This document shows, piece after piece, positions 1-58,935 of a stretch of 64,000 nucleotides of DNA. The notes below the pieces were generated by a model. It was given only the letters and a program-made list of their open reading frames with translations. It was not told where the DNA came from and did no database searches. This stretch comes from Lepidodermella squamata (Eukaryota; Animalia; Gastrotricha). Positions within the stretch are counted from its first letter, which is position 1, and each line of letters begins with the position of its first letter. The DNA lies in the NCBI GenBank assembly GCA_047495785.1, contig JBLDXI010000004.1, forward strand, positions 2,418,001-2,482,000. Direction: 5' to 3'. The position numbers were made by a program, and so were the translations under genes.

Positions 1-2584
1 AAGCCAATCAACAAGTTCTCGAGCTTGGTTTTCATTAGATTTTCTCGCCAGAGCCAACACATCTTCCCCAGCCCAGGTCAATTGATCGCGAGTTCCATTA
101 GCAGCCGACACTAAATACTTTACAAATTCCAATTGCCCGTATTTAGCCGCGAAATGAATTGGCATCATGCCAAACTGTGCTTCCCGCGCAAACACATTAG
201 CTCCTTTTGAAATTAACAGCCGGGCTACATTCGTTTTGCCAAAATTAGCAGCCCGATGAAGCATTGTCACGTTATTTCCTACCCTAGCAATGTTTACATC
301 AACTCCTTTTTTGAGGAAAAAATCGACAATTTCGTCATAACCAGCCGCAGCAGCTTGATGGCAGGGCAGATTGCGTTTTGCCAAGTCCTCTGCATAGATT
401 ATACTTGCATTCACCTGAACGAAATACTCGACAATAGGCAGAGTGGAAGTTTTGGCGTAGCAAGCTGAATGGATTGGCATGTCCTGCAAATCTTTCGTAG
501 ATCTCGCGAAAATATCAGCCCCCCGTCCTACTAGGTACTTCACGAGGCCAGATTTCGCGAAGCTCGCAGCCCAATGAAGGGGGGTTCGTCCGAATTCTGA
601 ATCTCGTTGGTCGATTAGGGAAGCGTCTTGGTCCAGCATAAAATCTAAAGCTTCGATGTTACCCTTGGCGCAGGCCTGGTGCACGGGGGTTGTTCCATGG
701 CTGTCGAACATTGAAATCAAATTGCGACCCATGATCGGCCACAACAGCTGCAGGGCTTCTTGTCTTCTGTTCAGAACCGCGTAGCCGAGAGGGGAGGTCT
801 TTTCTTCGTTGTCCAAAAGGATAGATTGCCAAGTTGATGGGCTGATTAGCACGTCCTTCGGGACCATTGCCATCAGATCTTCTATCGATCTTGTATCGCC
901 AGATTTCGCAGCAAGTATCAAATTATTAAGCTGTGCAATGTTCGATGAAAACTTGGGCTTTTCTTCCAGTTCAAATTCAAACCTCTTCTTTGTAGGCTCC
1001 TATAGAAGGTTCAGCTATTCTTTGTCCTTCAGTTGTTTGTACGGTTGTAGGCTTCAACGTTGTAGTTGTAGTTGTAGTTGTAGTTGTGGTAGGTCTAGCT
1101 TGGTTAGACCGGGGAACGAATAATCCAATCCAATTTGAGATGTTGCCGCAAATTCGAGTTTGAGCCATGCATGAAATAGAGCTGGGTGAATATACGCCAA
1201 TTTGGATATAGCGGCCGTTGCTTTTACAAAAGATTGGGCTTCCTGGGTTTCCGGCGCAAGAACTGCTTGTACATAATTGTACCTCGGAGGAAAAATTGAT
1301 GCGGCTATCAACTGATTGGCAGGTTTGGTTCGGCAGTATAGAAATGTTCAGCTTCTTCAATACTTTTGAACTATCTGTAAGTGTTTAGCAACGTCATTTA
1401 CACTTTATCATCGAAGGGAAAGATATCTTGAGACCATGAGATCTTAAGTTGGGGAGTGCGCCAAATTGAAAGCTCTAGCGCTAAATGTCCCCAAAGTTCC
1501 CGATTGATAGACCCGAATTCAATATTCAATACCAAACTGTTCCTCTCATTGAGAGGAGTCTATCGATAAAAGGAATTTTAGTGCTCCAGTTTTCGCTGAG
1601 TTACGACTAGTTTAAAATAATTCAAGTTACAGCGTGCCCCATTTTTCAAGTTTGCAACTTTTTCAGGAAAATTTGCTAGCTGTTTTTAATCAGACCAACG
1701 GGAAGAATCATCAAACAGCGCAGAAAATAAATATCTATCGGAGGAAACCCGGAAAACCCCGATGGCAAATGTTTCGGTAAATTTCGGTATTATACCCGTG
1801 GTATAACCTAATTTCTCTTTCCTAATTTATGTTAACGGAAAAATCGAAAATAAAAGTTAAGAAGTTACTTATGGGACACGCTTCAATTGTCAGTCACATA
1901 CATCTGAAAATTCTTGCAATAAATTACTCTCAATGCGAGGAATACTTTTCTATATAACTCGAGCAGAAGTGAAATTCAATTTTATACGAAATGTTCAGTA
2001 ATTAGCTTGAGATGGCGCTTGTCATTAGAGCTACGAGGTAAGACAGTTACATTATAGTTGCATGAACCTGTTTCACTCCAGCTGACGATGGATACATCGG
2101 AGCAGTTTCCGACAGCTGCAGCACATTGAGAATCACTCGGCATATCAATCGAATCGATAAAAGAAGATTCAGGTGACAGGTTAACAGGCGCCGAAAGCCT
2201 AATCAAAGCCGCATCAAACCGCTTCGTCGCTCGATCGTAATTTGGATGAACATAAATTCGGCTAGACTCTCGAAGCTGCTCACCAGGCTCATTTAGCTGC
2301 GCAAAATCGTATCGGCCAAGCCAAGCTCGAGCCATTGTCGCATTTTGAAGGTCGCCTGAAGAGTTGGGAATGCTTACAACACAGCTGGCTGAGGTTAACA
2401 GCCATTGAGGGGCGATCAGTGAAGCGCCACATGTAACAGAAGTTGAGCCTATGGGTATGTTAGGCTTCAATTTGACTGCGAAAGGAAACTCCCCTCTTTG
2501 CTCATGGCTCGACTGAGCATTAACAAACCAAAAACTCAGAGATGACAGTAAAAACAAGCTCTTCATTACTGACAGTGTTAGCAC
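1..2584 (-). CDS. Gene B1: secreted inactive serine-protease homologue + Thr-rich linker + ankyrin repeats (3' end runs just off the window)
   Basis: Exons about 2584-2068, 1374-983 and 930-<1, joined in frame by GT-AG introns. Signal-like MKSLFLLSSLSFWFVNA. Trypsin-fold motifs are present (EFPF, CGASLI, FDAALI), but TAAHC has become TSASC and GDSGGP has become GNPGSP. The last exon is paralogous to the ankyrin ORF 7758-8723. Confidence 0.8.
1630..1882. mobile_element. Degenerate MITE-like insertion in the first intron of B1
   Basis: Imperfect inverted ends (AGCGTGCCCCAT ... ATGGGACACGCT). This intron is about 420 bp longer than the equivalent intron in B2. Confidence 0.35.
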
Positions 2585-2668
2585 GATTACACACTTTTAA
2601 GGAAAAAATTGGCGGTGTTATACAAGAAAATTCGTGATTATGCAAATGGTGATTCACTCCAACTATCT

Positions 2669-4963
2669 CTAGATAAGACCGAGAAAGATCTGTAGAAAAG
2701 CCACGACTCGTGTCGTATCCTCGCCTTGATCAGCCCGAATAGCGCAACCTAGCGGAGTTTCGCCGTTGAAATTAACCTCCTCCGCTAGCCTTGTGAAATT
2801 CTCGGAGAAGTATTTGACAACAGGCAAACGGCCGTATTCAGCTGCGACGTGAATTGGCATGGAGCCATTCCCGGCTACATTACTCCTTGCCCTGACATTC
2901 GCGCCGCTTCCGGTCAAAAATTGGACCATATCCAAATTTCCATATTTCGAAGCTGCATGAAGCATCGTCCGATTCCATTCGGTACTCCGGCTCTCGATAT
3001 TCATGCCTAGGGTTAGGAAATAGTTTACCACAGCCACGCTACCCCCAGCAGCAGCTCGATGCATAGGGAGATTTCCCTTTGAATCTCTAACAAAAGTTAG
3101 ATTAGGTTGTAGAGACAAAAAGTATTCAACGACCGCCAAATAGCCTTCTTGAGCTGCGATGTGGATTGCGTAACTTTCCCAGCCATTCAAGTTGGATTTC
3201 GCGTTCAAATCCGCTCCCTTTAGCAGCAGATATTTCACGAGGCCTAAATAGCCATAGCTGGCGGCTCCATGTAAAGGAGGCCGGCCGTATTTTCCCTCGC
3301 GTGAATTCACTAACGATGGCATTTTCTCCAACAAGAAAGCGACTGCTAGCGTTGCGTTGTTGTAAGCAGCTCGATGAATTGCTGTTGATTGGTCGTAATC
3401 TGTGAAGTTGATCAGCGCTGTACCCATGATTGGCCATAGCAAATTTAGCACATCGATTTGGTCACGCCGGGCTGCGGCTATCAAAGGTGTTTCTTTGTAT
3501 GGATTCGTTATATTCGGCGATTTCCATAGATTGGGGTCGGATAGGAGCTGGGATGGGTACTTCGCAAGAATCCTTTTAACTTGGTTCAGGACGCCAGAAC
3601 TTGAAGCTTGCAACAAAATCGAAAACTTGTCGAAATTTCCCAGTATCTTTTAAATTTCGAGCTCAGTTTTTCCGGTGACTTACCTCAGATAGCATTGGAA
3701 TTAAATCGTGTACTGTCGTGGTCCTCCTTGTTGCCGTTGCTATTGTTGTTGTTGTTGTTGTTGTTTTTGTTGTAGTCCTTTGAGTTGTAGAGATGGGTAA
3801 GCAGCTTCCAGGTTGGGTCCAAGTTCCATTTCGTGAGCAATTGGTTGTCGAAGGTCCAGATCGAATGTAACTAGAATTGCACTGAAGGACAGCAATAGAC
3901 CCAATTGAAGAATTCGAACCCGAAAGTCGCCCGTTTGGAATAGTTGGTAAAGGTCCACAACCTAGGAAACATTACAACAAAGTTTGATTGTTTCACATTT
4001 TTGAAATTTGATGAAATTAATTAAATTTCAAAATTGAATTTGTTTCAGACCTTGAGGCCTGCTGGATCCATTGATTATTTGATTAATCCATGGCAGAGCT
4101 TCGCAAACTCTTGCATATATGGCAGGTGTAGGCGTAAAAGCACTGCATTTCGAATCACCATAGCTAACTATTCCCAACTGGTACAGACTTCCATCGTACT
4201 TTTTGCAAACCAACGGCCCACCCGAATCGCCAATGCATGTATCCCCATTATCCGGACCCCCGCCAGCACAAAACATGGACTTGTGGAAAGGGATTGATGG
4301 AAACGCTTCGTGGCACCATTCGCTGTAAGACCTAGTATCTAAGTAGACCTTTTGCAGAATTTTCGCCGTTCTATTTGTTTCAACATCGACAACGCCCCAA
4401 CCCATTGCCACTGCTGTTTGGCAGTTATCAACAACTATAGCATCTTCGTAGTATTCTGGATTGCAAACCGAGTTGTCTGGCAAAGGCAATTTGTTGATTT
4501 TCGATTTATCAGTCAAATTCGCTTCAGTTCTCAGTTCGATGAGAGCTAGATCGAATCGCTTCGTCTCGCTTTGGAACCCTGGATGGATGTAAATTTGCTT
4601 CGATACGACAAATTGCTCGCCAGGCTCGCGGAGCTGGAAGTCGTATCTTCCTAGACTGGCTTCAACTGCCGCCGCAGCAATTGCTTCCCCGGTGTACCTA
4701 TCAGTGATTTTGACGCAATGTGCAGCAGTCAGGAGGAAGTTCGCTGAAATAACCGAGGCGCCGCATGATCCTAAAGGTTTACCTGCCCCGTCTCGAATTG
4801 TTAAATAAGCGATGAATGGAAACTCGCCGGGTTCAGCACTAACCCCATTAAGGATACGGTTCGTAGCTCTGAAATCGCTGCTAATGGTTAATTGTAAATT
4901 GAAGAGATGAATGCATAGGTTGGCTAAGAGTTGGCAAGATCTGACACGGCTTTTCGTGTTCAT
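2669..4963 (-). CDS. Gene A1: secreted trypsin-like serine protease + sushi/CCP domain + Thr-rich linker + ankyrin repeats
   Basis: Exons 4963-4051, 3961-3684 and 3625-2669. Activation site R|ILNG. Catalytic triad motifs TAAHC, FDLALI and GDSGGP, with Asp at the S1 position (DTC). Exon 2 reads CGPLPTIPNG...C...Y...C..NGTW...C (CCP). Exon 3 has about 8 ankyrin repeats. Splice positions are conserved in A2. Confidence 0.85.
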
Positions 4964-5480
4964 GCTGACGATAGTAATCTGCGTAATAAAATTTTGCTTA
5001 TGCGTAATAAAACATGAGTTAAATGCCGCCGTTTATGTCGTGGAAATCTTTATTTCTTTATATGCCGCCATTGTGCACCCAGCAGTTGTAATGCAATGGG
5101 CATACCATGGCTACACGCCTACAGCACTCCAAAGCCCAAAAAGTCATTCAAATCATTGCAACCGCTCGATTCTTGAATAAATTCCATTATCTGGATGCGT
5201 TGACTTGTATTCTGTGTGATTAGTGATTAAAGATTGATAGGCAATGCGCAATACCTGAACGCTGAATTCGGTCAAATTATATAACATTGGAATGCTTTAA
5301 ATTTAGGAAGGCATTAGTCCTTTTAGAAACAGGAGAAGGTTAAGTAATTTTTAGAAGCAGAAGGCTAAAAAGCGAATTAGTGTCTCCAAACCACGATTAA
5401 ACATTAAATACATTAATTTTCTGACTTGATTGATGATTTTCTGTCTGTGTAAGACTATGTACGAACACTACGTAAGACCT

Positions 5481-5603
5481 ACAGTAGGGCTGAGGTGTGG
5501 CGACATCCTAGCTTCGGGATTCCAACCAGAGGAAGGGTGAAAAATCACAGGGGGACCCTTTGGTTTGCTGAAAAACACCTCAGTTCCAGGATTTTATTTC
5601 GCA
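5481..5603 (-). repeat. Partial copy of a dispersed MITE family (cf. 49981-50144)
   Basis: The reverse complement aligns with 49986-50130 (AAAGGG..CCCCTGTG.TTTTTCA.CCTTCCTCTGGTTGGA core). Confidence 0.6.
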
Positions 5604-7280
5604 GAGATACGGCGATTCATATTTAGAGTAAGCTAGTAGTTAGGGATAACATTAGGGTTTGGTCTTTGAATAGTTCATTTTATTTAAATGAATTATTACT
5701 CTTGCGGAACTGTCGTTATCTGAACTAACGCTACGGATTAGTTGTAGAACCGAAATTTGACTCTAATTTACTTTTTAATTTGAAATTACATTTATAAATT
5801 GTTAATTAGTAGTAAATATGTCAAAAGATGTTCACTCAAATTTCAGTAAAGCCATATAGCCATCCCCCTTGTAAAAATGGACGATGCTACGGAGCAGGCC
5901 TGTAATGCGCCTGTAAAGCTGGCTGGGCTGGGGCCACCTGTAATCAACGTGAGACAACATTCTTTCCTATCATTGCTTTGAAACAAACTAATAGCCTGTT
6001 GATCAGAGATCTGTGGGTCTGTGACTTGCCCGACTACGGCTTACTGCACCGCACCTAACACTTGACAAATGGAGGACTGGTGCCGGTTGTGAAAAAGGCA
6101 AGTCGAAGTAGCCCCTGCTGCATTGATAGGCGAAGCTACTAGGGCAAATACCACTTTGGAGCAAACAGAATGACGTGAAAAGTGTCGCGTAACATATGCG
6201 TTTTCGAGTAGCCCGCTTCTTTCCGCTAAGCATAAATGTATAACTTATTGCCCTCTTCGTATTCCCTTTACTCAACCATAATATGCCATGTTTCTTAGTT
6301 ATGTGCGATTGTGCGGTGGCCGAGCGATGTGCGGGCAAGCTGTGTGATTGTCCTGACGGCACGCAGAGGCGAGATTGCAACAACCAGAGTGACGACGATC
6401 TCTAGATATGTCCTACAACGGACAGCCTAACTATCCTTAGGATTAGATACACACTTCACTATTCACTATTCATGCTTTGCGGACTTAATTTAGCTTCAGC
6501 TATATGACAATAATTTGGATTCTGCCAGCGGAAATACAACCTTTTTTTTATCAGCTATACTTAACGTTGCAATCTGATAGTGAATAAGTGCAATTACCCG
6601 GTCAGGCCCGTAATATATCCGAATGTTTTTAATTTTTAATGTGAAATCATTCCTCCCAGCGGTTTTTACCTCATCCTTTTTTTCATTTTTTACATTAACA
6701 CTTGTACGCCCGGATGAAGAGAATCATAGTCAAAGGTGGTCGGTCCTATTTTTGTGCTTTTGTGTTCAAATCAACCCTGGAGTCGCCATGGCTGAAGCGC
6801 CGTTCGAAAAAGGAAGCTTCTAGAAGCTAGAATACCAGAACATTTATCACAACAGCGCTGAGAAAACCAGGGAGTAATCGATCCACCCAATATTTCTAAT
6901 AACGGCGTCACCTTGTGTGGCAAGGCAGAAAAACATCAGCATCGACCCGAACCTTGCGGCAAAACCGTTGTTTCGTGCCAGTACCTTGCACCTTGCACAT
7001 CACCTGAATGAAAAAAATGCCTTCAAGTATACATGATTATTCACCCGGCGTTGTTTTATCTTGATATCGAGCGTGCTAAAATAAGCGAAGAGCCTACTGA
7101 ATCCTGAAACTCCTAAAATCCTAATTCGCTTGATATCAGCTGGGAGCTGGATTCAGGCGTGTGAGTGGGGGCAATCAAATCTAATCATTTAAAATAGAAA
7201 ACTCCCATTTTTTATTTATTCACAATTCAACAGTTTTAAGAGGTCTCTTGTAGGCTAAACAAGTTTTGAATGAAAGTTTT

Positions 7281-7343
7281 GTGGTTCGAACCTCGGCCTC
7301 CTGTACATCACTCAGCTATTTTTTCCACTGAGCAACAGAAGAC
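7281..7343 (-). repeat. tRNA-derived (SINE-head-like) remnant
   Basis: The minus strand has an A-box-like TTGCTCAGTGG and a B-box GGTTCGAACC at tRNA-like spacing, but no complete cloverleaf. Confidence 0.4.
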
Positions 7344-7757
7344 AACTGTTTTTTGTTCTCACTATTTGGTTCATATTTTCTTCTTTCATGGGAAACTTTG
7401 AATTTTTTCATTCCGAGAATACTTATTAGCTGTTTTAAGCTTCACTTTATATCGAAAGCGTGTTGGCGTATCTGTTGAGCTTCATTGCTCGGTGACTGAT
7501 TACATACACGCAATCGAATCTCACTATAGTCCAACCCCAGAACAGTTGAGCCTGCTTCAGAGACCCGTTAAAACCTGGCTTACTGCAAATACAAACACAT
7601 TCGAGTTTGTGAACGTTTAAAAATGCAATAGTATTAAGAAATAAGGAAAAAACATTTACACTGCGTTAAATCATTGCTCTTTTTACATCAACTTTTTCAC
7701 TTCTGTTTGTGCGCATCCCTTTAGTTTTGCCAGTCAGCATATTGTAAACATTAGACC

Positions 7758-9917
7758 TCAAAATGAAGCTCCGTTGGAAAGCCAATCAACAAGTTCTCTA
7801 GCTTGGTTTTCCTTGGATTTTCTTGCCAGGGCCAACGCATCTTCTCCACCCCATGTCACTTGATCACGAGTTCCATTGACAGCCGACACCAAATACTGCA
7901 CGAATTCCAATTGGCCGTATTTTGCCGCAATATGAATTGGCATCATGCCGAAATCAGTTTCCCTTGCAAAAGCATTCGCCCCTCTTGACATCAATAACCG
8001 GGCGACATTCGTTTTGCCGAACATCGCAGCTCGATGAAGCATTGTCACATTATCGCCCAGCCTACCAACATTCACTCCAACCCCCTTTTTCAGGAAAAAA
8101 TCAGCAATATCGTCATAACCCGCCGCAGCAGCTTGATGGCAGGGCAGATTTCCTTTCGCTAAGTCCTTTGCATAGATCAAACTTGAATTCAATTGAACGA
8201 AATACTCGACAATTGGCAGAGTGGAAGGTTTGCCGTAGCAAGCTGAATGAATAGCTAGGTCCTGCAAATCCTTAGTGGATCTCGCGAAAATATTCGCTCC
8301 CCTTGCGACTAAGTATTTCACAATTCCAGATTTCGCGAAGCTCGCCGCCCAATGAAGCGGGGTTCGTCCGAATTCCGAATCGCGTTGGTCGATTAGCGAC
8401 GCGTCCTGGTCCAGCATGAAGTCTAGGGCATCGACGTTACCCAGAGCGGAGGCTTGGTGGACGGGTGTTGTTCCATGGCTGTCGAACGTTGAAATCAACT
8501 GACGGCCCATGATCGGCCACAAAAGCTGAAGGGCGTCTTGTTTTCTGTTCAGGACAGCGTAGCCGAAAGGCGAGGTCTTTTCGCTGTTGTTCAAAAGGTT
8601 CGATTGCCAAGTTGTTGGGCTGAGTAGCACGTCCCTCGGAACCATTGCCAATAAGTCTTCTATCGACCTTAAATCCCCAGATTTCGCTGCTAGTATCAAA
8701 TTATCGAGCTGAAGAATATTCAATTAAAAGAAAGGGTTGTCCTGAAACTTCAAGCCAAACTTCTTCTTTGAACGCTCCAACTAAAGGTTCAATAGTTTGC
8801 TGTGCCAAGATTTGGACGTTTGTAGTTTGGGTAGTTGTAGGCTTTGATGTTGTTGTTGCGGGTCTTGTTTGGTTAGACTTTGGTGGAAGAATGACGAACA
8901 ATTTAATCCAATTGAGAATATTGCTGCAGATTCGAGTGTGAACCATGCATGAGGTTGAGTTTAGCGAGGATATTCCTATTTGGATAAAGCGGCTGTTGTA
9001 TTTGTCTTTGCAAACGATAGGGCTTCCTGGATTGCCAATGCACAAGCTGCTGGTGCATAATTGATCGGAAGAAGAATCGATTGATTGACAGGTTTCGAAT
9101 GGCAGAATAGACACGTTGAGCTTCGACAACAGTTTCGAACCATCTGAGAGTATTAAAGAACATTATTCACTCATTCTCGTAGTTCGAATGGAAATGAAAT
9201 TTTCCGAGACCTTGAGATCCTTACTTGATTTGAGCCTAATCGAGGATTCCCAAAGATTCCCGGTAGTTGTGGTTATTTTAATGACAAGTTTCTATTTTTA
9301 TGACCAACTGGCAAATCTCAACTTCGGAACCGTAGACGCGAATTCGATACTGAACGATTTCTCTCAGTGAAACGGTCTATTAGTATTAGCTACAAACTGG
9401 AGAAAGGTTCAGTACCTGTTTCACTCCAGCTGACCATAGAAATATCGGAGCAGTTTTCTATAGCTGCCTTACAAATCGAATTGCCCGGCAAATCGACTGA
9501 ATCGATGAAAGGAGATTCAGCAAGGTTAACAGGCGCAGAAAGCCTAATCAAAGCAGCGTCAAACCGCTTCGTCACTCGGTCGTAATTCGGATGGACGTAG
9601 ATTCGATTGGACTCTCGAAGCTGTTCGCCAGGCTCATTCAGCAACGCAAAATCGTATCGGCCGATCCAAGCTCGAGACGTTGTCGCGTTTCGAAGCTCAC
9701 CAAATATGTTGGGAATGCTTACAACGCAGCTGGCTGAAGTTAACAGCCATTGCGAGGCGATCAGTGAAGCGCCGCAGACAACAGAAGTTGGCTCACTGGG
9801 CAGAATGGGCTTCAATTTAACTGCAAAAGGGTATTCCCCTCTTTGAGCATTGCCAAACCAAAAACTCAAAGATAACAGTAAAAACAAGCTCTTCATTAAT
9901 GACAGATTAATTTGCAT
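7758..9917 (-). CDS. Gene B2: secreted inactive serine-protease homologue + Thr-rich linker + ankyrin repeats
   Basis: Exons 9917-9416, 9143-8761 and 8708-7758. TSASC and GNPGSP replace the catalytic His and Ser motifs. Ankyrin repeats include GRTPLHWAA and GMMPIHIAAKYG. Paralogue of B1. Confidence 0.85.
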
Positions 9918-9996
9918 GAATTGAACACGATTAACACAGCTTTAAGGAAAAAATGACGCAGTTTTACTACAAATTTCGTGATAAACAATTGATGAT

Positions 9997-12301
9997 TCAT
10001 CTTTTGGTAGGGCTGAGAAAGTTCCTTAGAAAAGCGACGACCTGAGTTGTATCCTCGCCTTGATCAGTTCGAATTGCGCAATCCAACGGAGTTTCGCCCC
10101 TGAAATTGATTTCCTCCGCCAATCCAGCAAAATTCTCGGAAAAATATTTGACCACGGGCAAACGGCCGTATTCTGCTGCGACGTGAATTGGCATAGAGCC
10201 ATTTCCGGCTATATTACTCCTTGCTCTAACATTCGCGCCTTTTACGGTCAAAAACATGACCATATCCGAATTTCCCCATCTCGAAGCTGCATGTAGCATG
10301 GTCCGATTGAATTCAGTATTCCGGCTCTCGATATTAAGGCCTAGGGTTAGGAAATAGTTTACCACGGCAATGCTACCCCCAGCAGCAGCTCGAAGCATTG
10401 GGATGTTACCCTTCGAATCCTTAACAACAGCTTGATTGGGCTGTAGAGACATGAAGTATTCAACGACCGCCAAATGGCCTTCCTGCGCTGCGAGGTGGAT
10501 TGCGTAACTTTCCCAGCCATCCAAGTTGGATTTCGCATTCAAATCCGCCCCTTTTTGCAGCAGAAACTTAACGAGGCTCAAATAGCCGTAGCTAGCAGCT
10601 CCATGTAAAGGCGGTCTGCCGTATTTGCCCTCACGTGAATTTACTAAAGACGGCATCTGTTCTAGGAGGAAAGCGACCGACAGCGATGCGTTGTTGTAAA
10701 CTGCCCGATGAATCGCTGTTGATTGGTCGAAGTCTGTGGCGTTTATCAGGGCTGTGCCCATGATTGGCCATAGCAAGTTGAGCACGTCGATTTGGTCACG
10801 GCGAGCTGCGGCTATTAAGGGCGTTTCTTTGTAGGGGTTCGTTATATTTTGCGATTTCCAAAGATCCGGGTCTGATAGGCGCCGAGATGGATATTTAGCG
10901 AGAATCCTTTTCACTTCGTTCAGATCGCCAGAACTCGATGCTTGCAACAAAATTTTGAACTTTTCATAATTTCTCTTAATTTTAACGGTGGAACTAAGCT
11001 TTTTTGACGACTTACGTCAGATAGCATAGGCATTAAATTGTAAATTGTCGTGGTCCTCAATGTTGTAGCCCTTTGAGTTGTAGAGATGGGTGTAGTCCTT
11101 TGAGTTGTAGAGACGGGTAAGCAGGTACCAGGTTGGGTCCAAGTTCCACTTCGAGAGCAAGAGATTGTCGAAGGTCCAGATCGAATGTAACCCGAATAGC
11201 ATTGAAGGAAAGCTATCGACCCAATTGAAGAATTTGAACCAACAATTCGCCCGTTTTGAATTGCTGGCAACGCTCCACAATCTAAAAAAGATTATTTTTT
11301 CAAACATTTTTGAAATTTATTGAATTTGAAAATTCAAATGAATTAAAAACTAGAAAAATTTGATAAAATCCAGATTTCCGACCTTGAGACCTTGAGGTGG
11401 TTTCATTGATAACTTGATAAATCCAGGGCAAAGCTTCGCAAACCCTCGCATAGATGCCAGGAATAGATTCGTAAGCACTGCACTTCGAATCACCATAGCT
11501 AACAATCCCCAACTGGTACAAACTTCCATCGTACTTTTTGCAGACCAACGGCCCACCGGAGTCGCCCATGCAAGTATCCCCATTATCTGGACCCCCGCCA
11601 GCACAGAAAAATGACTTATGAAACGGGATTGATTGAAACACGTCCTGGCACCATTCGCTGTAGGACCTTGTGTCTAGGTAGACCTTTTGCAGAATTTTCG
11701 CCGTCCTATTCGTTCGAATATCAACAACTCCCCAGCCCATTGCAACTGCAGTTTGGCAATTATCAACAACTATTGCCTCTTCGTAGTATTCAGGATTGCA
11801 AACAGAGCTATCTGGCAGAGGCAACTTGTTGATTATCGATTTTTCAGTGAAATTCACCTCATTTCTCAATTCTATCAAGGCAAAGTCGAATCGTTTTGTC
11901 TCGCGTTGGAACCCTGGATGGACGTAAATTTGCTGCGATTCCAGAAACTGTTCGCCCGGCTCGCGGAAAAGCTGGAGGTCGTATCTCCCTAGTCTAGCCT
12001 GAACTCTCGCAGCTAAATTTGTTTCCCCAGTGTATTTGTCGGCGATTTTGACGCAATGAGCAGCAGTTAGGAGAAAATTCGCTGAAATAACCGAGGCTCC
12101 GCATGTTCCTATAGCTTGACCCGTAACGTCTCTGATCGTTAAATGGGCGATGAATGGAAATTCGCCGGGTTCAGCACTCACTCCATTGTGGATGCGTTCC
12201 GTAGCTTGAAGATCACTGCTAAAGGTTAATTGTAGATTGATGAGGTGAACGCATAGGTTGGCTAAGAGTTGGCAAGATCTGACACGGCTTTTCGTGTTCA
12301 T
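9997..12301 (-). CDS. Gene A2: secreted trypsin-like serine protease + sushi/CCP + Thr-rich linker + ankyrin repeats
   Basis: Exons 12301-11383, 11281-11016 and 10959-9997. Motifs R|IHNG, TAAHC, FDFALI and GDSGGP. CCP exon reads DCGALPAIQNG...GTWTQPGTC. Ankyrin exon corresponds to ORF 9997-10950. Confidence 0.85.
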
Positions 12302-12796
12302 GCTAACGATGATAATCTGCTTTTTGCTGCTTTAAACAAGCATTTGTAAACATGCATGTGTTTAATTCTATGACGTCATGAATGTGATTTTAATCACAGC
12401 TATCAAGAAATTCCAACTACAGAATGTTATATTAAATAGGCCACCAGTTTACTGAAGCAGTGTGCAAGTACAGCGTGCATGGATAGACTTGAAATTGAGA
12501 CTCAATTTCGCCTAATTAAGTGTGCACACAGTGGCAAATGTGCGACTATAGAGAATTAAAGATTTCCCTTCCGAGTTCAAAACATTAAAGGCATCCATTA
12601 TTTTCTTTTATTCTATTATTATTTTATTTTATTATTAAATATTCCATATTTATTATGGAAAAGAAGTACCTATATAATTGTAGGACAAGAGCGATATAGG
12701 ACATCTGCAAATGACATAAAATCAGCGTTATTACTTCGAACAGTAATTATAAAGTTTCCTAGGTAGTGATTAAGCAATATATATTTCAATCATGTA

Positions 12797-15700
12797 TCAT
12801 TCATTTGCGAGATTGCAGTCTCTGATGACACCGGCTGCTAGGATGACGTCTATTGTTTTAACCTTGTTTTCTTCCGACACGTTATCTTCGCAATTTTGGG
12901 CGAGGACTAGAGCAGTCCAGCCTGTGGAGGGCACTCTATAATTGACATCCGCTCCCAGTCCTGCTAGAAGTTCCACAACTGCGTAGTGGCACTTCCATGA
13001 TGCGCACATTAGCGGAGTCATCCATTTTTCAGATAGTAAGTCAATGTTTTGACCCAGTTTCTTCGACAATCGAGATGAGACCTCATTGTTAATACACAGA
13101 GCATTCACATCGGCGCAAAACTGTCCCGCTAGCAGGTGCACAATGTCAACGCAGCCTTGGTCCGCTGCTACGTGAAGTGGCGTCACTCCATTTCTGTCTG
13201 TTGCAAAAGAGGCATTGACGTAAGCTTGGAATTCTCCAGCTAGCACTCCCACGATTTCAGCATGGCCATTCCCAGCAGCTACATGCAAGGGTGTCAAGCC
13301 ATCCTTACCGGAGGCATTGACGTCAGCTCGGAATTCTCCAGCTAGCACTCTCACGATTTCAGCATGGCCATTCCTAGCAGCGAGGTGCAAGGGTGTCAAG
13401 CCATCCTTACCGGAGGCATTGACGTCAGCTCGGAATTCTCCAGCTAGCACTCTCACGATTTCAGCATGGCCATTCCTAGCAGCGAGGTGCAAGGGTGTCA
13501 AGCCATCCTTACCGGAGGCATTGACATCAGCTCGGAAATCTCCAGCTAGCACTCTCACGATTTCGGCATGGCCATTCCTAGCAGCGAGGTGCAAGGGTCT
13601 ATATCCTGAATTCATAGTCGCGTCCACATTTATAAAAGAAGTTGCTAGAATTCTCGCTACTTCAACATGTCCTTCTATGGCTGCGACGTGCAACAATGTC
13701 ATGCCTTGTTCATTTATTATTTGGGTGTTAGCTCCCATATCAGCTGCCAATAGCTTGACTATTCTGGCGTGGCCGTTCTCTACAGCCGCCCATATTGGTG
13801 TCTTGCCGTCTGCTGCGGCACAGTTGACACTTTCGTGTGAAAAGTTTCCGAGAAGATGCACAGTCCTCGTCCGGCCACACTCAGCAGCGACGTAGATAGG
13901 AGTTCTGCCCACCAAGTCTGCAGACAGTGGATCAGCTTTGAACTTCGTTACCAGAAGTTCAACGATGTCATCACGACCCTCTTGTGCAGCAAGGAACAAC
14001 GGGGTAATGCCTTCGTCATTTTTGAAGTTCACATCCAAAGCCGAGTTTGACAGCAGCGATTCGATTTCTTTCTCCTTATTGTGTTGCCTTATGAGTCGAA
14101 ACAGTGGCTGAAAAGACGTAGACGAAGTGTATCTTGAAATTCATTTTTGAATTTACATACTTTTGGATCTAATAACTCGGTGTTCATGTTCATATGCGGG
14201 GGGGTTGGATCATTCAGTGAGCAGAGTAGAGCTAGCGGCGAGATTCGCCTCGACCAATCTCTAATTAAAAATGCCAAAATAACATTCCGGAATGCGGGCG
14301 AATAACCGCGCGAATCGTCAAACGGTTTCTGCCTGTTTCTGCAAATTAGTTAATGTGATTCTCCGAAAAGTCTTTCAGGCAGGAACTTACAGCATGATAT
14401 CCAGGACATTTTCGAACTAAAAAGAAGCCGTGTGGTAGGAAATAGTAAAAGGCTTAATAATAAAGCTAACGGGCCTGTAAAAATTGGCTAATTCGAACAA
14501 AGTTACACCCAAAGACCACCAATCGCTTTCAATAGAGTGCTCCTTTTCCATACAGAATAGTTCAGGCGCCATGTAGCACACGGTGCCAAGCCTGAAGTTG
14601 AACGGCGGTGATTGCTCGATACTGCTTGTTGAGCTGAATAAAATAACGTGGCACATTCATCGTTCAGCGTTCAGAGTATACACTGCTCATCTTACCCATC
14701 ATGAATCTCTGCCAAGCTGAAACCACCGAGTTTCACATCATCGATTTGCAGGAAAATATTTTTCGGCTTGATGTCGCGATGGAGCGCTTGCTTTTCGTGC
14801 AGAGCAGCCAGCGCCGAAGCAAGTTGTCGCGACCATTCTAGCAGCAAATCTTCGGAAATGGGAGCATTTGCTCTTTTTATGTACTCGTCTAAGTCTCCCC
14901 CAGAGCAGTATTCCATGACAAGGTAATAAATATCAGCTCCAGAAGCGCCCGTCTCTGTGATAAAAAGAGGAATCGTTGTGGAACCACTAGTAACTAGTAA
15001 GTTGAACGTTGGCGCGCACGCTGATAGGTGAATTGATCGTTCCTATGGCTACTGGATGAGACATTTATGCCGTGCGATGCACTGATAAATTAGTTCATAT
15101 TTCAGTAAAAAAATGGCTTCGCCACACCCCCTGTTTTCATTGACCGCTTGTCTAAACTCCATACTAACAATCATGGAAAATTACTGCAGCAAAAAACACT
15201 TGCAGAAAATATTTTCGATCGCGCGACCATAATGTTCCATCCGGTAACAATCGATTGACCAATCAGCGTGCGCATCTGATTTGAACTTTTTGATTGTTAC
15301 CGCGATGATCGGCGTCCCTTTGAGAGAAGCCTTCAAGAAAAGAGTTGCAAGGCGAGAAGTCATAGAAGCTAATTTGTGGAGATAATCAAACGCCCTCAAT
15401 CACCAAGTCCTTACTCCTTCTGTCCTTTACACACGTGAGACTTGAGGGAAGAGTGGTCCGACTACCTCTCGCAAGGCGTGAATCGACAGGGCCGAGAAGA
15501 AGCTGCCAATGATTTACTTGCGGTTCGAGGCACAGTTTCGAGGTCAACGAACAAGCGAATCATAAGCGAAATCAACTTTAAACACTGCGCTAACCTTAAA
15601 CCCTGCACCTGTTACAATGTAATTCCCGCTTTAACCCAATTTAACCCAACCAACCTCGCGTTTCGATAGTGTCGGTATATATAACGACCTGCCACCATTC

Positions 15701-17299: not shown

Positions 17300-19320
17300 T
17301 TAATTACGCCTAATCCTTTTGCAAGAACGCACACTCGCGTCACTTTTCCCCCTGGATGTTAGGAGATTTTCTATTCGCTGCTTGTCTTCCGCTGATACTT
17401 TATCGTCACAATTCTGTGCGAGTAGTAGAGCGGACCAGTCCGTCGATGGAGCTCTACAATTGACATTCGTACCAAGCTCTCGAGTTAGCAGATCTACAAC
17501 TGCGTAGTGACCTTTGAATGATGCGCACATGAGCGGAGTCATCCATCTTCCTGAAGGAGCACCAATGTTTTGCCTGAGTTTCGATAACAAGTAAGATGCT
17601 GTCTCTTTGTTAACGCACATCGCATTTACGTTGGCTCCAAACTGCTCAACCAGAAGCCTGACAATTTCGACGTGGCCACCATCAGCAGCGATGTGCAGTG
17701 GCGTAGTTCCATCTCGGTCTCGAGCATCCACATCGCTACCATAATCTGATAGTAACATCTTCACGATGCCCAAGCTACCTGAACGAGTGGCAACATGGAG
17801 CGGCGTAAGACAACAGTGTGACTGCGCAACGAGAATTTTGGCGATTTCCTCGTTTTTATTCTCGGCAGCTATATGCAAAGGAGTCCAGCCATCTTTTCTT
17901 GTGGCAGTAACATTCGCTTCGAATTCCTCGGCTAGAATCCCCACGATTTCTGCTTTTTTACTTTGACAGGCGATGAACAGAGGAGTCCGACCTTCCTCAT
18001 CTGGCGCATTAACATTAGCCTTAAAATCTCTAGCTAAAATTCTCACAACTTCCGCATGTCCATAAAGAGCCGCGAAATGCAAGGGAGTCCCGCCATCTTG
18101 TTTCGAGGCATTGACATCAGCCTTGAATTCCCCGGCTAACATTTTTACTATATTAGCGTGCCCACTCCAAGCAGCATGATGTAAGGGAGTCCAACCATCA
18201 TTTGCCGGTGTATTAACATCAGCGTGGTATTCTGCTAGAATTCTGACTATTTCCTGATGTCCTTTCTCAGCAGCGTAATGCAAGGCTGCTCGGCCATCAT
18301 TCGCAGTGACATTAACAGTAGTGCGGGATTCACTGTTGGCCAAGATGATCTTCACAATTGCTGTATGTCCCTTTTCAGAAGCATAATGCAATGCTGTTCG
18401 CCCATCTTCGGCAGAGATATTAACATTAGTTTTATTGTTGACTAAGGTCATCACTACAGCAGTATATCCCCTCTCAGAAGCGTAATGCAAGGCTGTTCGG
18501 CCGTCCATATCCTGGGCGTTGAAATTCGCTTGACTTATATTGGCTAGGCTGTTGACGATTTTTTCATAACCTTGCTCAGCAGCGTAATGCAAGGCAGTTC
18601 GGCCATCTCCTGACTTTTCATTTGCATTAGCTCTGGGTTGATTTCCAAGTAGATTCACCATATCTAAGTTGCGTCTTAGCACTGCAAGATGTAAGGGCGT
18701 GTAACCCGAGGTCCTCATTTTTGCGTTCACACTGTAATCATTTGCTACAATTCTTGCTACATCAACATGTCCGTTCATAGCTGCGACGTGCAACAGTGTC
18801 ATGCCTTGCTTATTCGTTATTTGGGTGTTAGCGTTCAATTCTGTCCCCAACAACTTGACAATTTCAGCGTGGCCGTTCTCCGCTGCCACCCATATTGGCG
18901 TTCTTTCATCTGAGGACGCGCTGTCAACACTTTGTGGACAACATTTTCCAAGGCGTTCCACGATCGTCCTCCGGCCACAATCAGCAGCGACATAGATGGG
19001 AGTTCTCCCCAACAAATCCAAAGATAACGGATTCGCATGGAACCTCAACAGAAGATCAACGATGTCATCATGCCCGTCTTGTGCAGCCAGAAACAACAGG
19101 GTAATTCCATCTTCACTTTTGAAGTTCACGTCCAAGTTCGATTCAGGATTTGATAACAGCGATTCGATTTCCTTCTTTTTCTTTTCCCTGATTAGTCGAA
19201 ACAACCCCTTGAACGAAATTATGGCAAGCGTTCTTTCGTTTCAGATTCGAATTCACCTACCATTTGCGGATTAATGGACGAAGATGTTGACTGGACGCGC
19301 GTCGCATTGGCATCCGCCAT
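17300..19320 (-). CDS. Ankyrin-repeat protein (about 17 repeats), kinase-less paralogue
   Basis: Large exon 19207-17300 is homologous to the ankyrin exon of the kinase-ANK genes (LFRLIR…, WMTPLMCAS.KGHY tail). Candidate short first exon 19320-19261 (MADANATRV…), with intron 19260-19208. Confidence 0.8.
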
Positions 19321-22931: not shown

Positions 22932-23290
22932 GGAATTTGGGAAAACAAATTGGATTTTCGGAATCAGCGCGAAAAATTAGGGTAGTCTGCATGTTTGCGC
23001 ACGGTTATCGTGAAAATTGGAGAAGAAATGGGAATGTAAAGAAATTAACTTGTGCGCGCGTGAGAGAGCGCGCGCGCATTTATCACACGCTACACACGGC
23101 TTCCCCGCTCATGCGCGCTTCCCAAATGCGCACGGTGGAGCGCGTGGAAGGCTGTGTGTGCGCACTACAATCCGCGAAATGTTTGACGACCTATTTCTTC
23201 CTGATTTTGCTTGCTAACTGTGCGCAAATTTGCAGACTACCCTATTTTTTTGCGCTGATTCCGAATATCTAATTTGTTTTCCCAAATTCC
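22932..23290. mobile_element. MITE with roughly 75-bp imperfect terminal inverted repeats
   Basis: GGAATTTGGGAAAACAAATT…GGGTAGTCTGCA is mirrored by TGCAGACTACCC…AATTTGTTTTCCCAAATTCC. No clear TSD. Confidence 0.7.
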
Positions 23291-23624
23291 TGATAGTTAC
23301 CAAGTTGTAATGACTATGTAAAATTGTAAATTGGGCAGTATCAGTCTTTAAAAAAACACTAGTTTCATGGTAATAGATGAGTTTTCCCATAAATTATCAA
23401 GAATAAATACCCAAAAATAGTAATTCCAGGCGTTTAAAGCATGAAATATAGTCAGAATTATCAAATTTCGGCTCGCTGCGCTCGACAATTATTTTCTGCT
23501 TTATTGGCTGCGATCTGCGATCTGCGATCTGCGATTGAATATTAAATTTTCTGAGGTTTTTTAATTGATAATATTTACTCGACGCTTCCCATCGCGCCAC
23601 AGCTTTGAGGAAGTTTACTGGAGT

Positions 23625-25136
23625 ATGGCTACACCAGCGAAGAAGCCATTTGGAATGACTGTCGAAGAGCGAGCGAAGAAGCTGCGGGTCGACGATCTTA
23701 CGGTCGATCAAGTTGCTCTCGTCATGCAGCTAATCCAGCAGTTACGCTCGGAGAATGCTGACACCGTTCCGTCGTCTCCCTGCCCGCCGACTGGGCAGTC
23801 CCCTCCTCACCTGTCTTCGTTCGGTGACCTTCAGATGTCTGTTGACAGTCCACCTTCCTCCCCACCCCCGTCGTCAAGTGGGGCGTCGAACCAGCCCTGG
23901 CAGCAAGCGTCGCCCAAGCGTAAAGTGGCGCGCAAGGAAGACCCGCCGCCTCCGCCCCCGACTCGTACATCTGCTCCCCACCCGTCTATTGGACCTCAAG
24001 AGGCGCCTGTCAACTACAAGGTCGTGATAATCGACCGCGTCACTGGCATGACTCGTGGAGAGCTCGAGCCAGAGTTGGTCCGCGTTGCGCCATGGCTGGC
24101 GCCCGTCGCGGTCGATGTCATGAGCAGCGGCGGCCTCCGCGTGAAGTGCGCCACTGCGACGGACGCTGACAAGCTACTCAAGCGTACCGGCTTCCCTAAG
24201 GGTGCGTTTCGCGACTCAGACTTCCGCATTCACTATCCGGGCCGGCCTGACCCGACTGTGACCGAATCAGATCGCATTTTGAAAGACAAACGCTCGGCCA
24301 TATGCTACCGCCTGCCCTCCTGTTACACTGGCGATACTCTGCGCCCCCTTTTCCGGCCCGAGTATATCGAGGAAATCCGCGAGATTCCCCCGCTCCCTGG
24401 TAAGCAGACGTCGCCGATGGTGCTCGTCTTTCGATCGGCTGAGCATTACGAGGATGCCATGGCTAACGGTGTCAAGTTTCTGAATCGTCGCATTAAAGTC
24501 CACAAGTTGAAAAGCAAGGCTCTCCCGCCTACCTGTCTGAAGTGCGCCGCTTACGGCCATGTCGCTGTCGATTGTTCTCCGGACACCACGCCACGATGCA
24601 GCCGCTGTGCTGCGACTGATCACACGATTTCCACCTGTCTCGCTGAGCCTGAAGATCGTCGTTGCCCCCACTGCAGTGGCGGCGGTGAGCCTCATCATTC
24701 TGGTTCGTGGCGGGGCTGCCCTGCGTTCAAGACCGCCCAGGCTGACGAGGTGGCCCGTCGCCGTGCCATCGCCGTCGCCCGTGAAGCGAAAGCCGCCGAA
24801 CGTGAAAAGCGTCGTCAACAAGCGAAGGTCCCCGAGCACCTACGGGGTGGCCCCACGCACTTTCTCTCCACCCGTGACTTTGTCGGCGGACCAACGCCTG
24901 CTCCGTGGTCATCCACTTCTCCGTCGTGGGTGCCTCCTGCTACTCCGCCTGTTAATCCTGCACTCCGCGGTCACTTTCTGTCGCCTGATGGCGCCCGGCT
25001 CTTTAGTCTTATGGAAGAGCGGTTCCAGCGTATGGAAGCCGCTTTCGAGCGCCGACTCGACACTGTCGGACGCTTATTCGACCGGCTCTTCGCCCCCCCG
25101 CTGCCGCCACAAACCAGCTCGACCCGTAATGGCTAA
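23625..25136 (+). CDS. LINE ORF1, gag-like nucleic-acid-binding protein
   Basis: Three Cys/His knuckles: CLKCAAYGHVAVDC, CSRCAATDHTISTC and CPHC…H…C. Pro-rich N-terminus. First ATG at 23625. Confidence 0.85.
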   Translation: MATPAKKPFGMTVEERAKKLRVDDLTVDQVALVMQLIQQLRSENADTVPSSPCPPTGQSPPHLSSFGDLQMSVDSPPSSPPPSSSGASNQPWQQASPKRKVARKEDPPPPPPTRTSAPHPSIGPQEAPVNYKVVIIDRVTGMTRGELEPELVRVAPWLAPVAVDVMSSGGLRVKCATATDADKLLKRTGFPKGAFRDSDFRIHYPGRPDPTVTESDRILKDKRSAICYRLPSCYTGDTLRPLFRPEYIEEIREIPPLPGKQTSPMVLVFRSAEHYEDAMANGVKFLNRRIKVHKLKSKALPPTCLKCAAYGHVAVDCSPDTTPRCSRCAATDHTISTCLAEPEDRRCPHCSGGGEPHHSGSWRGCPAFKTAQADEVARRRAIAVAREAKAAEREKRRQQAKVPEHLRGGPTHFLSTRDFVGGPTPAPWSSTSPSWVPPATPPVNPALRGHFLSPDGARLFSLMEERFQRMEAAFERRLDTVGRLFDRLFAPPLPPQTSSTRNG

Positions 25137-28002: not shown

Positions 28003-31000
28003 GCTGTTATTCTCTTTTCTCCCATCTTCTCTCCTATATCTTCCCTCTTTTTTCTTCACCTCTTATTTCATGTTGTTTTTCTTTCCTCTACAGGCTGCCT
28101 TGCTTTTTTATAAAATTCCTCCGTTAGCTACCGTTGTCTCCGCCTTATTTTCTCCTTTTTACTCTTACCGCAATTCTCTGTAATGTGTGTCTCTCTGCTG
28201 TCGATAACTACCCTGCAACTGATAAAACCCTCGCCATCTCCCTCTCCGTCTCTTACGTGCCCCATCAATATGATGAGCATGGATACATCTTACTAGCACG
28301 CGCCTCTTGTTCCATAGTATTATTAGAGAGTTATTTTGTGTGTTTTGTTATTTGGAAAGAGGACAACAATAAAGATTTTTATGTTTTATGTTTATGGGTG
28401 CTTTTAAGTCCTCAAATGATCAACCCGTGGCTATCGTTGATTTTCTGCGCTCGCTATGTTTATTTTTCAATCTAGTAACGCGGAACATGGAGGTGCGTGG
28501 TGGAAACACGTTAAAATGGGTTGAAATGAGGCAGAGGCGATTTGGGAAGATTTAAGCTCGGTGGTGGGAAGAAAAACACTTTTTGCAGCCCTGTGCAATG
28601 GAGTCAAGCCATCTTCATCAGAGGCATCAACTTCAGTATGAAATTCTTCGCCTAGAAGTTTCATGAATTCAACTCGCCAAATCTCAGCAGTGATGGGATA
28701 ATAAGTTTGAGATGCCGACGTGGCAGTAACATCAGCGTGAAATTCTCCGGCTAGAATTCTCACGATCTCTGAGTGTCCTTCCCGAGCGGCGTAATGCATG
28801 GGGGTCTCGCCTTCTTTATCAGTAGCATGAACTTCAGCATCGCATTCTCCGGCTAAAATCTGAACGATTTCCGCGTGTCCCCGCATAGCAGCGTAATGCA
28901 ATGGAGTACAGCCAAATCTGCTAGAGGCATTTACGTCGGCATGAAAGTCGTCGGCTAGAATTCTGACGATTTCAGCGTGGTTATTTCTAGCAGCGTAATG
29001 CAAGGAAGTCAAGCTATCTTTATCTGATGCTTTAACGTCAGCATGAAATTCCCCGACTAAAATTTTGACGATTTCCGCGTGTCCATTTCGAGCAGCATAA
29101 TGCAATGCCTTTTTCGCGAGTGTCAGCAACGTCGGCAGACGTATCTCCGTCACGGAATTTAATGCGTTTCGCTTCTTTATCATTGGCATTAACATCAGCA
29201 CCGAATTCGCCAGCTAGAATCTTCACGATTGCTGTATGCCCATTCAGAGTAGCGTAATGCAATGGAATACAGCCGGTTCTGCTAGAGGCATCAACGTCAG
29301 CATGAAATTCTCCGACTAAAATTTTGACGATTTCCGCGTGTCCATTTCGAGCTGCATAATGCAATTGAGTCTCGCCTTTTTCGCCAGTTGCAGAAACGTC
29401 AGCATCGAATTCTTCGACTAGAATCTTCAATATGTGCCTCCCGGGCAGCGATTTGCAACGGCGTATCGCCATCTTTCGATTCCGCGTGAGCATTTGCGTT
29501 TAATTCTTTTACAAGTATAATCACCATGTCCTTGTGACCTCTCAGCACGGCGAGATGCAAGGGTGTATAACCCGATGACATTTTAGTGTTCACAGACTGG
29601 CCCGCATCCGAGGCTAGAATTCTCACAACTTCAACGTGACCTTCCATTGCTGCGACGTGTAATAATGTCATGCCTTGCTCATTCACTATGTCGGTGTTAG
29701 CACCCATTTCTGTCGCCAATGATTTTACAATCCTACCGTAGCCGTTCTCCACTGCCGTCCATATTGGCGACTTGCCATTCCCTGCTTTTGTTTCAATAGT
29801 TTCACTTGCTAAGTTTCCGAGACATCTTACAGCTTTAGCCCGGCCACAATCAGCAGCGACATAGATAGGAGTTCTACCCAGCAAGTCCATGTATAGTGGA
29901 TCAGCATTGAACTTCGTCACCAGAAGATCAATGATGTCATCGTGACCCTCTTGAGCAGCAATGAACAACGGGGTAAAGCCTTCTTCACTTTTGAAGTTCA
30001 CGTCCAAGTTCAAGGTTGAGTTCGATAACAGCGATTCGATTTCTTCTGTCTTATGTTGCCTGATAAGTCTAAACATAAGCTAAAAAGAGGTAACTAATTA
30101 TACTTTTGTTTTTGAACGCGCTCACCCTTTTCGCAGCATTTCCATCGATTATCTCAGAAATGTCTTCCCCATCATTGTCTATAGTAGTTTGCTGGGAAAA
30201 TGGATCAATTGTCGAACTGAGCAATGCATGAGGGCGGAGACGCCTTGAACTATCCTTTTCACGGATAATTGCCATAATGACGCTGCGAAATGCGGGCGAA
30301 TATTTGCGTGAAGCGTCAAAAATTTTCGGGGGGTTTCTAAATAATCAATCGGCTTTATTTTTCCTAAAAGTTGGCTGATCGCCGAGACTTACGCTGTGAT
30401 ACCCATTATGGAATCGAACTATACGGAGTGGTCTGGTAAAATCAAGTGTTTGGTTCTAGGCTCAAATACTAACCGGCAGGTAGAAATTAGCCAGCTCGAA
30501 TAAAGTGACACCCACAGCCCACCAATCGCTCTCGTGTGAGTGCTCTTTCCTGTTGAACAATTCCGGCGCCATGTAATGCATGGTTCCAAGCCTGAAGTTG
30601 TACGCCGTTTGCTGGATACTGATTGAAGAGCTGCGAGGCGTGAATAACATTCATGAGTGATTCAAATCACTGATAGCTCTAGTTTTACTTGTCATAAATT
30701 TTCGCCAAGCCAAGATCCCCTAGTTTCACTTGACCGTTGTGCAAAAAGATGTTTTTAGGCTTTATGTCGCGATGGAGTGCTCGATTGTCATGCAGGGTAG
30801 CGACCGCTGAAGCAAGTTGTCGCGACCACTCTAATAGCACACTTTCAGGGATGGGACCTGTTGCATTTTTCATGTAATTATCCAAGTCTCCGCCAGAGCA
30901 GTATTCCATGACAAGGTAATACATTAGAGAACCTGAATTCCCCGTCTCTGTGATAAAAAATTAGGGGACATTTGTAATTATTACCAGTGATACATTTCGA

Positions 31001-42133: not shown

Positions 42134-42181
42134 ATAAGGAATGCGCGATCGTGAGTGGAAAACATTCACTAGGGCACGATT

Positions 42182-42209
42182 TTGAGACTAATTAAACGTG
42201 ATAATCGAT
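42182..42209 (+). promoter_or_regulatory. Invariant 28-bp motif upstream of GPCR copy 1
   Basis: TTGAGACTAATTAAACGTGATAATCGAT is identical at 42182, 44767 and 45688, about 190-220 bp before each GPCR copy. Confidence 0.6.
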
Positions 42210-42400
42210 AAAAGCTTCCGGATAAATTAACTCGAGCAGGAATAGAGTGCACCGTCTTTTCTAAAACGCTCACATTAATATAAGAGCCCTTTTTTATAAT
42301 AAACAAGTTCTCCAACCCATAATATTGAATCTAAAGTCGTCTTGCGAAGAAATGCTCGATTCGTAAAGATTAGTAACAGGTTTTTCTTAAATTTATTACG

Positions 42401-58929: not shown

Positions 58930-58935
58930 CGTTTA

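Follow-up and report, generated by a model that had tools for sequence, protein, structure and literature searches.

An apparently undescribed fusion of S1A proteases and pseudo-proteases to ankyrin repeats in the gastrotrich Lepidodermella squamata

We examined a 64,000-nt stretch of genomic DNA from Lepidodermella squamata, a gastrotrich (contig JBLDXI010000004.1 of assembly GCA_047495785.1, positions 2,418,001 to 2,482,000; hereafter the window), in which the region analysed, positions 1-12301, holds two tandem units on the minus strand, each composed of a gene A followed by a gene B. Gene A encodes, in order, a trypsin-type zymogen, a single CCP module, a Thr stalk, and a nine-repeat ankyrin array, while gene B encodes a signal peptide, a pseudo-protease, a stalk, and an ankyrin array. 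Together these genes represent a real, expressed, and apparently undescribed architecture among modular S1A proteases and their homologues. The explanation towards which we lean is that all four are functional genes of a lineage-specific, secretory-pathway S1A family with stalk-mounted C-terminal ankyrins, in which A would be an exosite enzyme and B a binder.

Two gene types in two tandem units

When the window was compared with itself by BLAST, the two units emerged as paired stretches, 1-1451 against 7779-9227 at 77.7% and 2066-4982 against 9414-12320 at 80.5%, which corresponds to 78-80% DNA identity between the copies that we refer to as left and right. A sequence-only reading of this DNA had proposed that the A-B pair was copied as a unit, and these stretches bear it out. 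That reading had also assembled the open reading frame (ORF) fragments into two spliced gene types, in agreement with both the Pfam domains and the introns that we find: both A copies have Trypsin, Sushi, and Ank matches in consecutive ORF pieces, both B copies have a split Trypsin and Ank with no Sushi, and GT-AG introns connect the pieces in frame through stop-free joins. Intron 1 of A (phase 1) spans 101 nt in the right copy and 89 nt in the left, and intron 2 (phase 0) spans 56 and 58 nt, or 41 and 37 nt with an alternative upstream AAG; intron 1 of B (phase 1) spans 272 nt in the right copy and 693 nt in the left, and intron 2 (phase 0) 52 nt in both. With the preferred second acceptor the A-left and A-right models are 715 aa each, and B-right is 604 aa. 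All four genes had been described as open, which holds for A-left, A-right, and B-right; B-left is shown to be open only as far as base 1, the window edge. GC content across the window is approximately 43%.

The two A copies match perfectly over 54 nt (12251-12304 against approximately 4913-4966), a run that spans the ATG and the first 17 codons, while synonymous divergence elsewhere is approximately 0.55; this run may reflect gene conversion or an RNA-level constraint. Directly beyond the 3′ end of B-right lies a high-copy repeat (7546-7690) with a DNA contig depth above 1000.

Gene A as a predicted trypsin-type zymogen

The Trypsin match in gene A (PF00089) scores 138 bits over profile positions 1-220. 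His57, Asp102, and Ser195 are all present, the last inside GDSGGP, as is Asp189, and the activation site (R/IHNG in the right copy and R/ILNG in the left, with the slash marking cleavage) yields an N-terminal Ile16, although the His at position 17 of the right copy is atypical. Given this activation site, the triad, GDSGGP, and Asp189, gene A should, by established S1A rules, encode a trypsin-type zymogen, predicted to cut after basic residues. The mature protease domain contains ten Cys and lacks Cys122; following known trypsin numbering, we take the ten to form five disulfides (42-58, 128-232, 136-201, 168-182, and 191-220). The stalk that follows the CCP is 50-55% Ser/Thr/Pro, and the ankyrin exon, whose repeats are spaced 34-37 apart, was modelled as nine helix pairs with a predicted local distance difference test (pLDDT) score of 95. 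The best Foldseek matches of this model were designed ankyrin repeat proteins (DARPins), espin, and ankyrins. Domain matches, residue positions, and activation sites thus support the composition first proposed for A, that of a zymogen trypsin with an intact triad joined to a CCP, a Thr stalk, and ankyrins.

Gene B as an inactivated paralogue

Gene B retains Asp102 and has Ser at the His57 position and Pro at the Ser195 position, with no activation peptide and no CCP, consistent with its proposed derivation from a related protease that lacks the catalytic His, the catalytic Ser, and the activation site. All ten mature-domain Cys of A align with Cys retained in B, and the first exon of B is 39% identical to the A protease. 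The ankyrin block of B had been taken to differ in kind from that of A; this did not hold, as the B ankyrin exon is a collinear, full-length paralogue of the A exon, with 35% identity over 313 aa and the same start register (its single-sequence model has a pLDDT of 47). Because the two blocks are collinear, B, which lacks the CCP, is an old and inactivated sister to an A-like gene and not the outcome of a fusion event of its own. The protease domain of B is also interrupted by a phase-1 intron (9415 and 2067), just past the GWG-equivalent, where A has no intron; we presume this to be an old trypsin-gene intron position, which would mean loss in A.

Purifying selection and the ankyrin binding face

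Between the left and right copies, the ratio of nonsynonymous to synonymous substitution rates (dN/dS) is 0.18 for the A protease, 0.15 for the A ankyrin, and 0.56 for the A CCP and stalk, and it is 0.23 and 0.19 for the B pseudo-protease exons and 0.15 for the B ankyrin, at a synonymous divergence (dS) of approximately 0.5-0.6 (1.1 for B exon 2). This comparison, which had been put forward as a check on the A and B pairs, gives purifying values throughout (0.15-0.23 for the protease and ankyrin parts); the four genes are maintained under purifying selection, and the dead domain is not decaying.

No excess variation was found on the canonical ankyrin binding face when the two copies were compared (12/112 positions differ, vs 68/423 elsewhere); the counts are 3/56 vs 35/216 for A and 9/56 vs 33/207 for B. 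Diversifying selection on the ankyrin face was looked for in this two-copy comparison and not found. As the face is no more variable than the rest of the array, the pattern favours a fixed ligand, in these two lineages, over a diversifying repertoire. One may postulate that the ankyrins instead serve variable immune recognition, as naturally occurring DARPin-like modules that bind microbial targets and set off proteolysis in the manner of complement or factor C, a scenario that overlaps with the explanation we prefer. The CCP, the trypsin-type zymogen, and the pseudo-protease are all parts of invertebrate immune cascades (established knowledge; PMC10540698), and the structural matches of the A ankyrin to DARPins and ankyrins would be in keeping with it. 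The lack of excess variation on the binding face and a dN/dS of 0.15 argue otherwise, however, and feeding, adhesion, cuticle processing, or egg-shell processing fit equally well; we consider the immune scenario unlikely.

Splicing and expression

RNA support comes from contigs of a public run that is classed as probably RNA. These contigs skip 9143^9416 (272 nt) and 8708^8761 (52 nt), which are both minus-strand GT-AG and coincide exactly with the predicted B introns, and RNA depth within B intron 1 is zero. The joint 8708^8761 is the B-type stalk-to-ankyrin join and shows a B-type fusion, though the contig may stem from a paralogue. Coverage by RNA contigs is fuller for B than for A. Over 7781-8673 the RNA contigs also contain a third B-type ankyrin sequence, which differs by 5-10% from B-right and is not B-left (over 368 nt it shows 36 differences, against 63 between left and right); it is either another expressed paralogue or a diverged allele.

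That the joins of A are spliced as modelled is very likely, judging from several features of intron 2 and exon 3. The intron 2 donors are GTAAGT in both copies, and the acceptor at 10959/3625 falls at the same codon and phase as the RNA-confirmed start of B exon 3. Exon 3 of A contains 66 codons before any Met, in which 7 replacement and 22 silent changes separate the copies, so that this segment must be translated from an upstream exon. The A ankyrin model, moreover, begins with a full-confidence cap helix at the preferred acceptor (pLDDT 95).

Several observations weigh on the other side. In both copies the preferred second acceptor of A is an AAG that lacks a pyrimidine tract; A is covered at low depth, and the RNA check of splice junctions, which recovered both B introns, did not find the A joints among the RNA joints listed; and the B stalk-to-ankyrin join is represented by a single contig with a depth of 3.6 and 25 letters on its short side. 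The A ankyrin exon might be unjoined, or joined only rarely, through retention of intron 2 or termination of the transcript there: read-through from the donor gives a short tail and then a stop in both copies, which would leave a protease-CCP-stalk form, and the ankyrin ORF would be expressed separately, for example by trans-splicing. We regard this as quite improbable in view of the perfect donors, the conserved pre-Met codons, the intron position and phase shared with the confirmed join of B, and the existence of an intronless fused relative, P0262, described below.

The source assembly was probably generated from amplified DNA (PMC11660948), and the locus could in principle be made up of fragments of pseudogenes, or reflect chimeric amplification or an assembly error. 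This is hardly credible: the copies are only approximately 80% identical and their frames are open, and the artefact reading is refuted by the spliced RNA contigs, by a DNA contig that matches 7620-12280 without difference, and by purifying selection.

Secretion and topology

The start of B is a clear signal-peptide-like leader that is directly followed by the protease domain, and B is very probably secreted. A is probably secreted as well. Its N terminus has a basic N-region and a moderately hydrophobic core, but this core includes polar residues and its best 9-residue hydropathy is 1.9-2.0, which makes for a weak to moderate signal-peptide candidate, and a search upstream of A found no better signal-peptide exon common to both copies. 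The secreted system that had been envisaged is thus well supported on the side of B and moderately on that of A. Between the protease and the ankyrins, no 19-residue window is hydrophobic enough for a membrane span. The density of N-glycosylation sequons does not help the case for secretion, as the fused ankyrins (1.0-2.2 per 100 aa) overlap with neighbouring intracellular-type ankyrin genes (0.7-1.3).

The A-to-B spacer

The A stop and the B ATG are separated by 100 nt in the right unit and 102 nt in the left, with no AATAAA in between. A conserved acceptor-like site lies 43 nt (right) or 27 nt (left) before the B ATG, its pattern being derived from these two sites; its phase differs between the copies, and it is therefore no coding join. 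The homology upstream of A sets in at a CAG that precedes the ATG by 15 nt. From their sequence, the spacer site and this CAG would fit trans-splicing and an operon-like organisation; no spliced leader was found among the RNA loose ends listed. Operon-like linkage would give A and B joint expression, and adjacency also follows from the tandem-duplication origin of B.

An alternative scenario is that A and B are indeed fused and secreted but belong, independently of each other, to a tandem family that evolves by birth and death; B would have come from A by local duplication and be a stand-alone binder that has its own ligand, and the pair would have been copied through adjacency alone. The collinear paralogy of the two genes (39% in the protease, 35% in the ankyrins) means that their adjacency needs no functional cause, and the fuller RNA coverage of B and the presence of a third B-type sequence would also be in keeping with such a family. 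Set against this, the 100-nt spacer, its conserved acceptor-like site, and the absence of a polyadenylation hexamer have persisted in both copies across a dS of approximately 0.55, which fits joint transcription, and we view independence of the two genes as somewhat unlikely.

Relatives of the fused architecture

Homology searches were made exon by exon. No close relative of the A protease exon (matches of at most 38%) or ankyrin exon (at most 35%) was found in protein collections, within a search length window that excludes full-length fusions, and the best ankyrin matches (25-35%) reflect generic repeat likeness. A PDB sequence search at 1e-30, a threshold too strict to be informative, gave no match. 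Only one of 150 representatives, P0262, has both Trypsin and Ank. This protein is encoded by an intronless single ORF of 563 aa comprising a signal peptide, a trypsin, a linker, approximately three ankyrin repeats, and a hydrophobic tail, and it occurs on contigs from three ENA metagenome assemblies in a cluster of four members. Its source DNA has 38-39% GC and the adjoining amidase gene contains a short GT-AG intron, so P0262 comes from another eukaryote, probably an animal.

Among single-domain matches to A, P0262 ranks first (128 bits vs 112 for the next), and a two-cysteine insert and a YxRVC motif of A were found only in the P0262 cluster among 429 proteins. A 31-row tree groups P0262 with A (97% in the Shimodaira-Hasegawa-like approximate likelihood ratio test, SH-aLRT), but a 72-row quick tree failed to reproduce this grouping. 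While P0262 shares the protease signatures of A and the order of Trypsin then Ank, it differs in having no CCP, no Asp189, only some three repeats, and a hydrophobic tail at the C terminus, and the likeness of its ankyrin part to that of A is no more than generic. One of the four cluster sequences has an in-frame stop (L003:8832-8834) that separates the protease-linker from most of its ankyrin part, which is an allele or an assembly error.

The ESM Atlas contains a 53-member Trypsin+Ank cluster labelled Bacteria, which was matched by model features only (0.93, 152/256 shared) and not aligned. No other Trypsin+Ank protein appeared among the 120 matches listed for a whole-length P0262 search, and no family member was found in prokaryotic genomes, in plasmids, or among the listed metagenome-contig matches. 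A bacterial origin of the A protease, raised by many Bdellovibrio matches (30-34%), was not supported, as A falls outside them in both trees. Trypsin+Ank thus exists elsewhere among uncharacterised sequences, whereas Trypsin+CCP+Ank was not found outside this genome in protein collections, metagenomes, or the ESM Atlas. Literature and protein searches gave no described or annotated protein with this layout, in line with the initial impression that it matches no characterised protein; nor did we find a paper pairing gastrotrichs with ankyrin, and the L. squamata genome paper (PMC11660948) makes no mention of it.

Comparison with known systems

In C1r/C1s/MASP, factor B/C2, and horseshoe crab factor C, CCPs precede a C-terminal protease that is held by a Cys1-Cys122 bridge. 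Gene A likewise has a CCP and a trypsin-type zymogen in one chain, but its protease is N-terminal with a single CCP after it, Cys122 is absent, intra-domain pairs take up all ten Cys, and CUB, EGF, vWA, and lectin modules are lacking. Haptoglobin, HGF, protein Z, and azurocidin are pseudo-protease binders. B resembles them as a selected, catalytically dead chymotrypsin-fold domain that we propose to be a binder; to our knowledge, none of these proteins has ankyrin repeats.

Spider latrotoxins and bacterial ANK effectors provide examples of ankyrin arrays that work outside the producing cell. Oomycete signal-peptide ANK effectors are also exported ankyrin proteins (PMC11139960). Unlike in all of these, the ankyrins of A and B are fused to an S1A protease domain, in A together with a CCP, and the sequence likeness is only that of generic repeats. 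In arthropods, a clip-domain protease can act with a homologue as cofactor, as in Drosophila MP2 with cSPH35/cSPH242 (PMC10540698). The A-B pair is similar in placing an active S1A protease beside a non-catalytic S1A homologue, both of secreted type, but it differs in that no clip domain was matched, the ankyrins are C-terminal, and no phenoloxidase link is known. B also departs from clip-domain homologues in having Pro, not Gly, at Ser195, and in lacking His57 and the activation cleavage site.

Feature coordinates and neighbouring elements

Table 1 Annotated features of the right and left A-B units, with positions numbered along the window
Feature	Position	Strand	Description
A-right exon 1	11383..12301	-	Weak signal peptide/propeptide, activation site, S1A protease, ten Cys
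A-right landmarks	12193; 12058; 11887; 11578; 11560		R/IHNG with Ile16 codon; His57; Asp102; Asp189; Ser195 (in the order of the positions)
A-right exon 2	11016..11281	-	One CCP/Sushi module (4 Cys) and Thr/Ser-rich stalk
A-right exon 3	9997..10959	-	Ankyrin array of 9 helix pairs, caps counted; stop TGA; acceptor 10959 inferred (alternative 10974)
A-to-B spacer, right	9897..9996	-	100 nt; no AATAAA; acceptor-like site ending 9940 (putative trans-splice or 5′ untranslated region acceptor)
B-right exon 1	9416..9896	-	Signal peptide and N-terminal pseudo-protease half; Ser at His57 position 9731; Asp102 9560
B-right intron 1	9144..9415	-	272 nt; removed in RNA contig
B-right exon 2	8761..9143	-	C-terminal pseudo-protease half, Pro at Ser195 position 9030; Thr-rich stalk; no CCP
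B-right intron 2	8709..8760	-	52 nt; removed in RNA contig; stalk-to-ankyrin join
B-right exon 3	7758..8708	-	Ankyrin array collinear with that of A; stop TGA
A-left exon 1	4051..4963	-	Propeptide, R/ILNG 4855; His57 4720; Asp102 4552; Asp189 4243; Ser195 4225
A-left exon 2	3684..3961	-	CCP and Thr stalk
A-left exon 3	2669..3625	-	Ankyrin array; stop TAG; acceptor 3625 inferred (alternative 3646)
A-to-B spacer, left	2567..2668	-	102 nt; matching acceptor-like site ending 2594
B-left exon 1	2068..2566	-	Signal peptide and first pseudo-protease half
B-left exon 2	983..1374	-	Second pseudo-protease half and Thr stalk
B-left exon 3	1..930	-	Ankyrin array; frame open to window edge; final few codons beyond window

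Elsewhere in the window, a separate tandem family has kinase exons followed by long ankyrin exons (12800-15050, 17300-19240, 28470-31350, and 33540-34780); its ankyrins are of intracellular type, are 26-29% like the fused ankyrins, and in some cases contain near-identical internal repeats. At least three tandem copies of a multi-exon, membrane-protein-like gene lie at 42160-48950 with 70-80% identity. Two long interspersed nuclear element (LINE)-type elements carry endonuclease and reverse transcriptase ORFs (23565-27999 and 52077-55469), and inverted repeats at 46466-47878 (319 nt, 97.5%) and 22932-23290 (101 nt, 84%) are probably non-autonomous transposons. A compact minus-strand run of ORFs at 57400-61400, with a weak adenovirus-endoprotease match (E 0.007), suggests a Polinton/adintovirus-like insertion.

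Discussion

Under the explanation that we prefer, A would be synthesised in zymogen form, become active once cleaved after Arg (R/IxNG), and then cut after basic residues, while its ankyrin array, mounted on a mucin-like stalk, would be a tethered exosite keeping the enzyme on a single conserved partner, substrate, or surface; an exosite role is the most likely one for these ankyrins. B would go back to an older tandem duplication of an A-like gene; catalysis, the activation peptide, and the CCP would since have disappeared, and B would have been kept as a folded, non-catalytic binder. It would most likely act in the process of A as an adaptor, cofactor, or competitive decoy, aided by tight and possibly operon-like linkage.

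This last step should be interpreted cautiously. A partnership of enzyme plus cofactor is plausible but tentative: it was part of the sequence-only reading, as was a role in recognition, and both draw on analogy only. A more ambitious scenario would have A and B co-transcribed from a two-gene operon and assembled into an extracellular enzyme-plus-cofactor complex, in which secretory-pathway ankyrins replace clip, lectin, and CUB modules. We think this rather unlikely; if true, a neglected animal phylum would have evolved a recognition-proteolysis system independently.

Textbooks present ankyrin repeats as an intracellular scaffold, and the modular serine proteases of animals use a fixed set of extracellular modules. 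A selected and expressed family in which ankyrins lie behind a signal peptide and a disulfide-bonded protease would break that rule and would constitute a natural parallel to engineered DARPin-targeted proteases. To this the locus adds a direct splice junction between a pseudo-protease and ankyrins, a fused relative in a second, probably animal, source, and a compact, testable pair of live and dead proteases.

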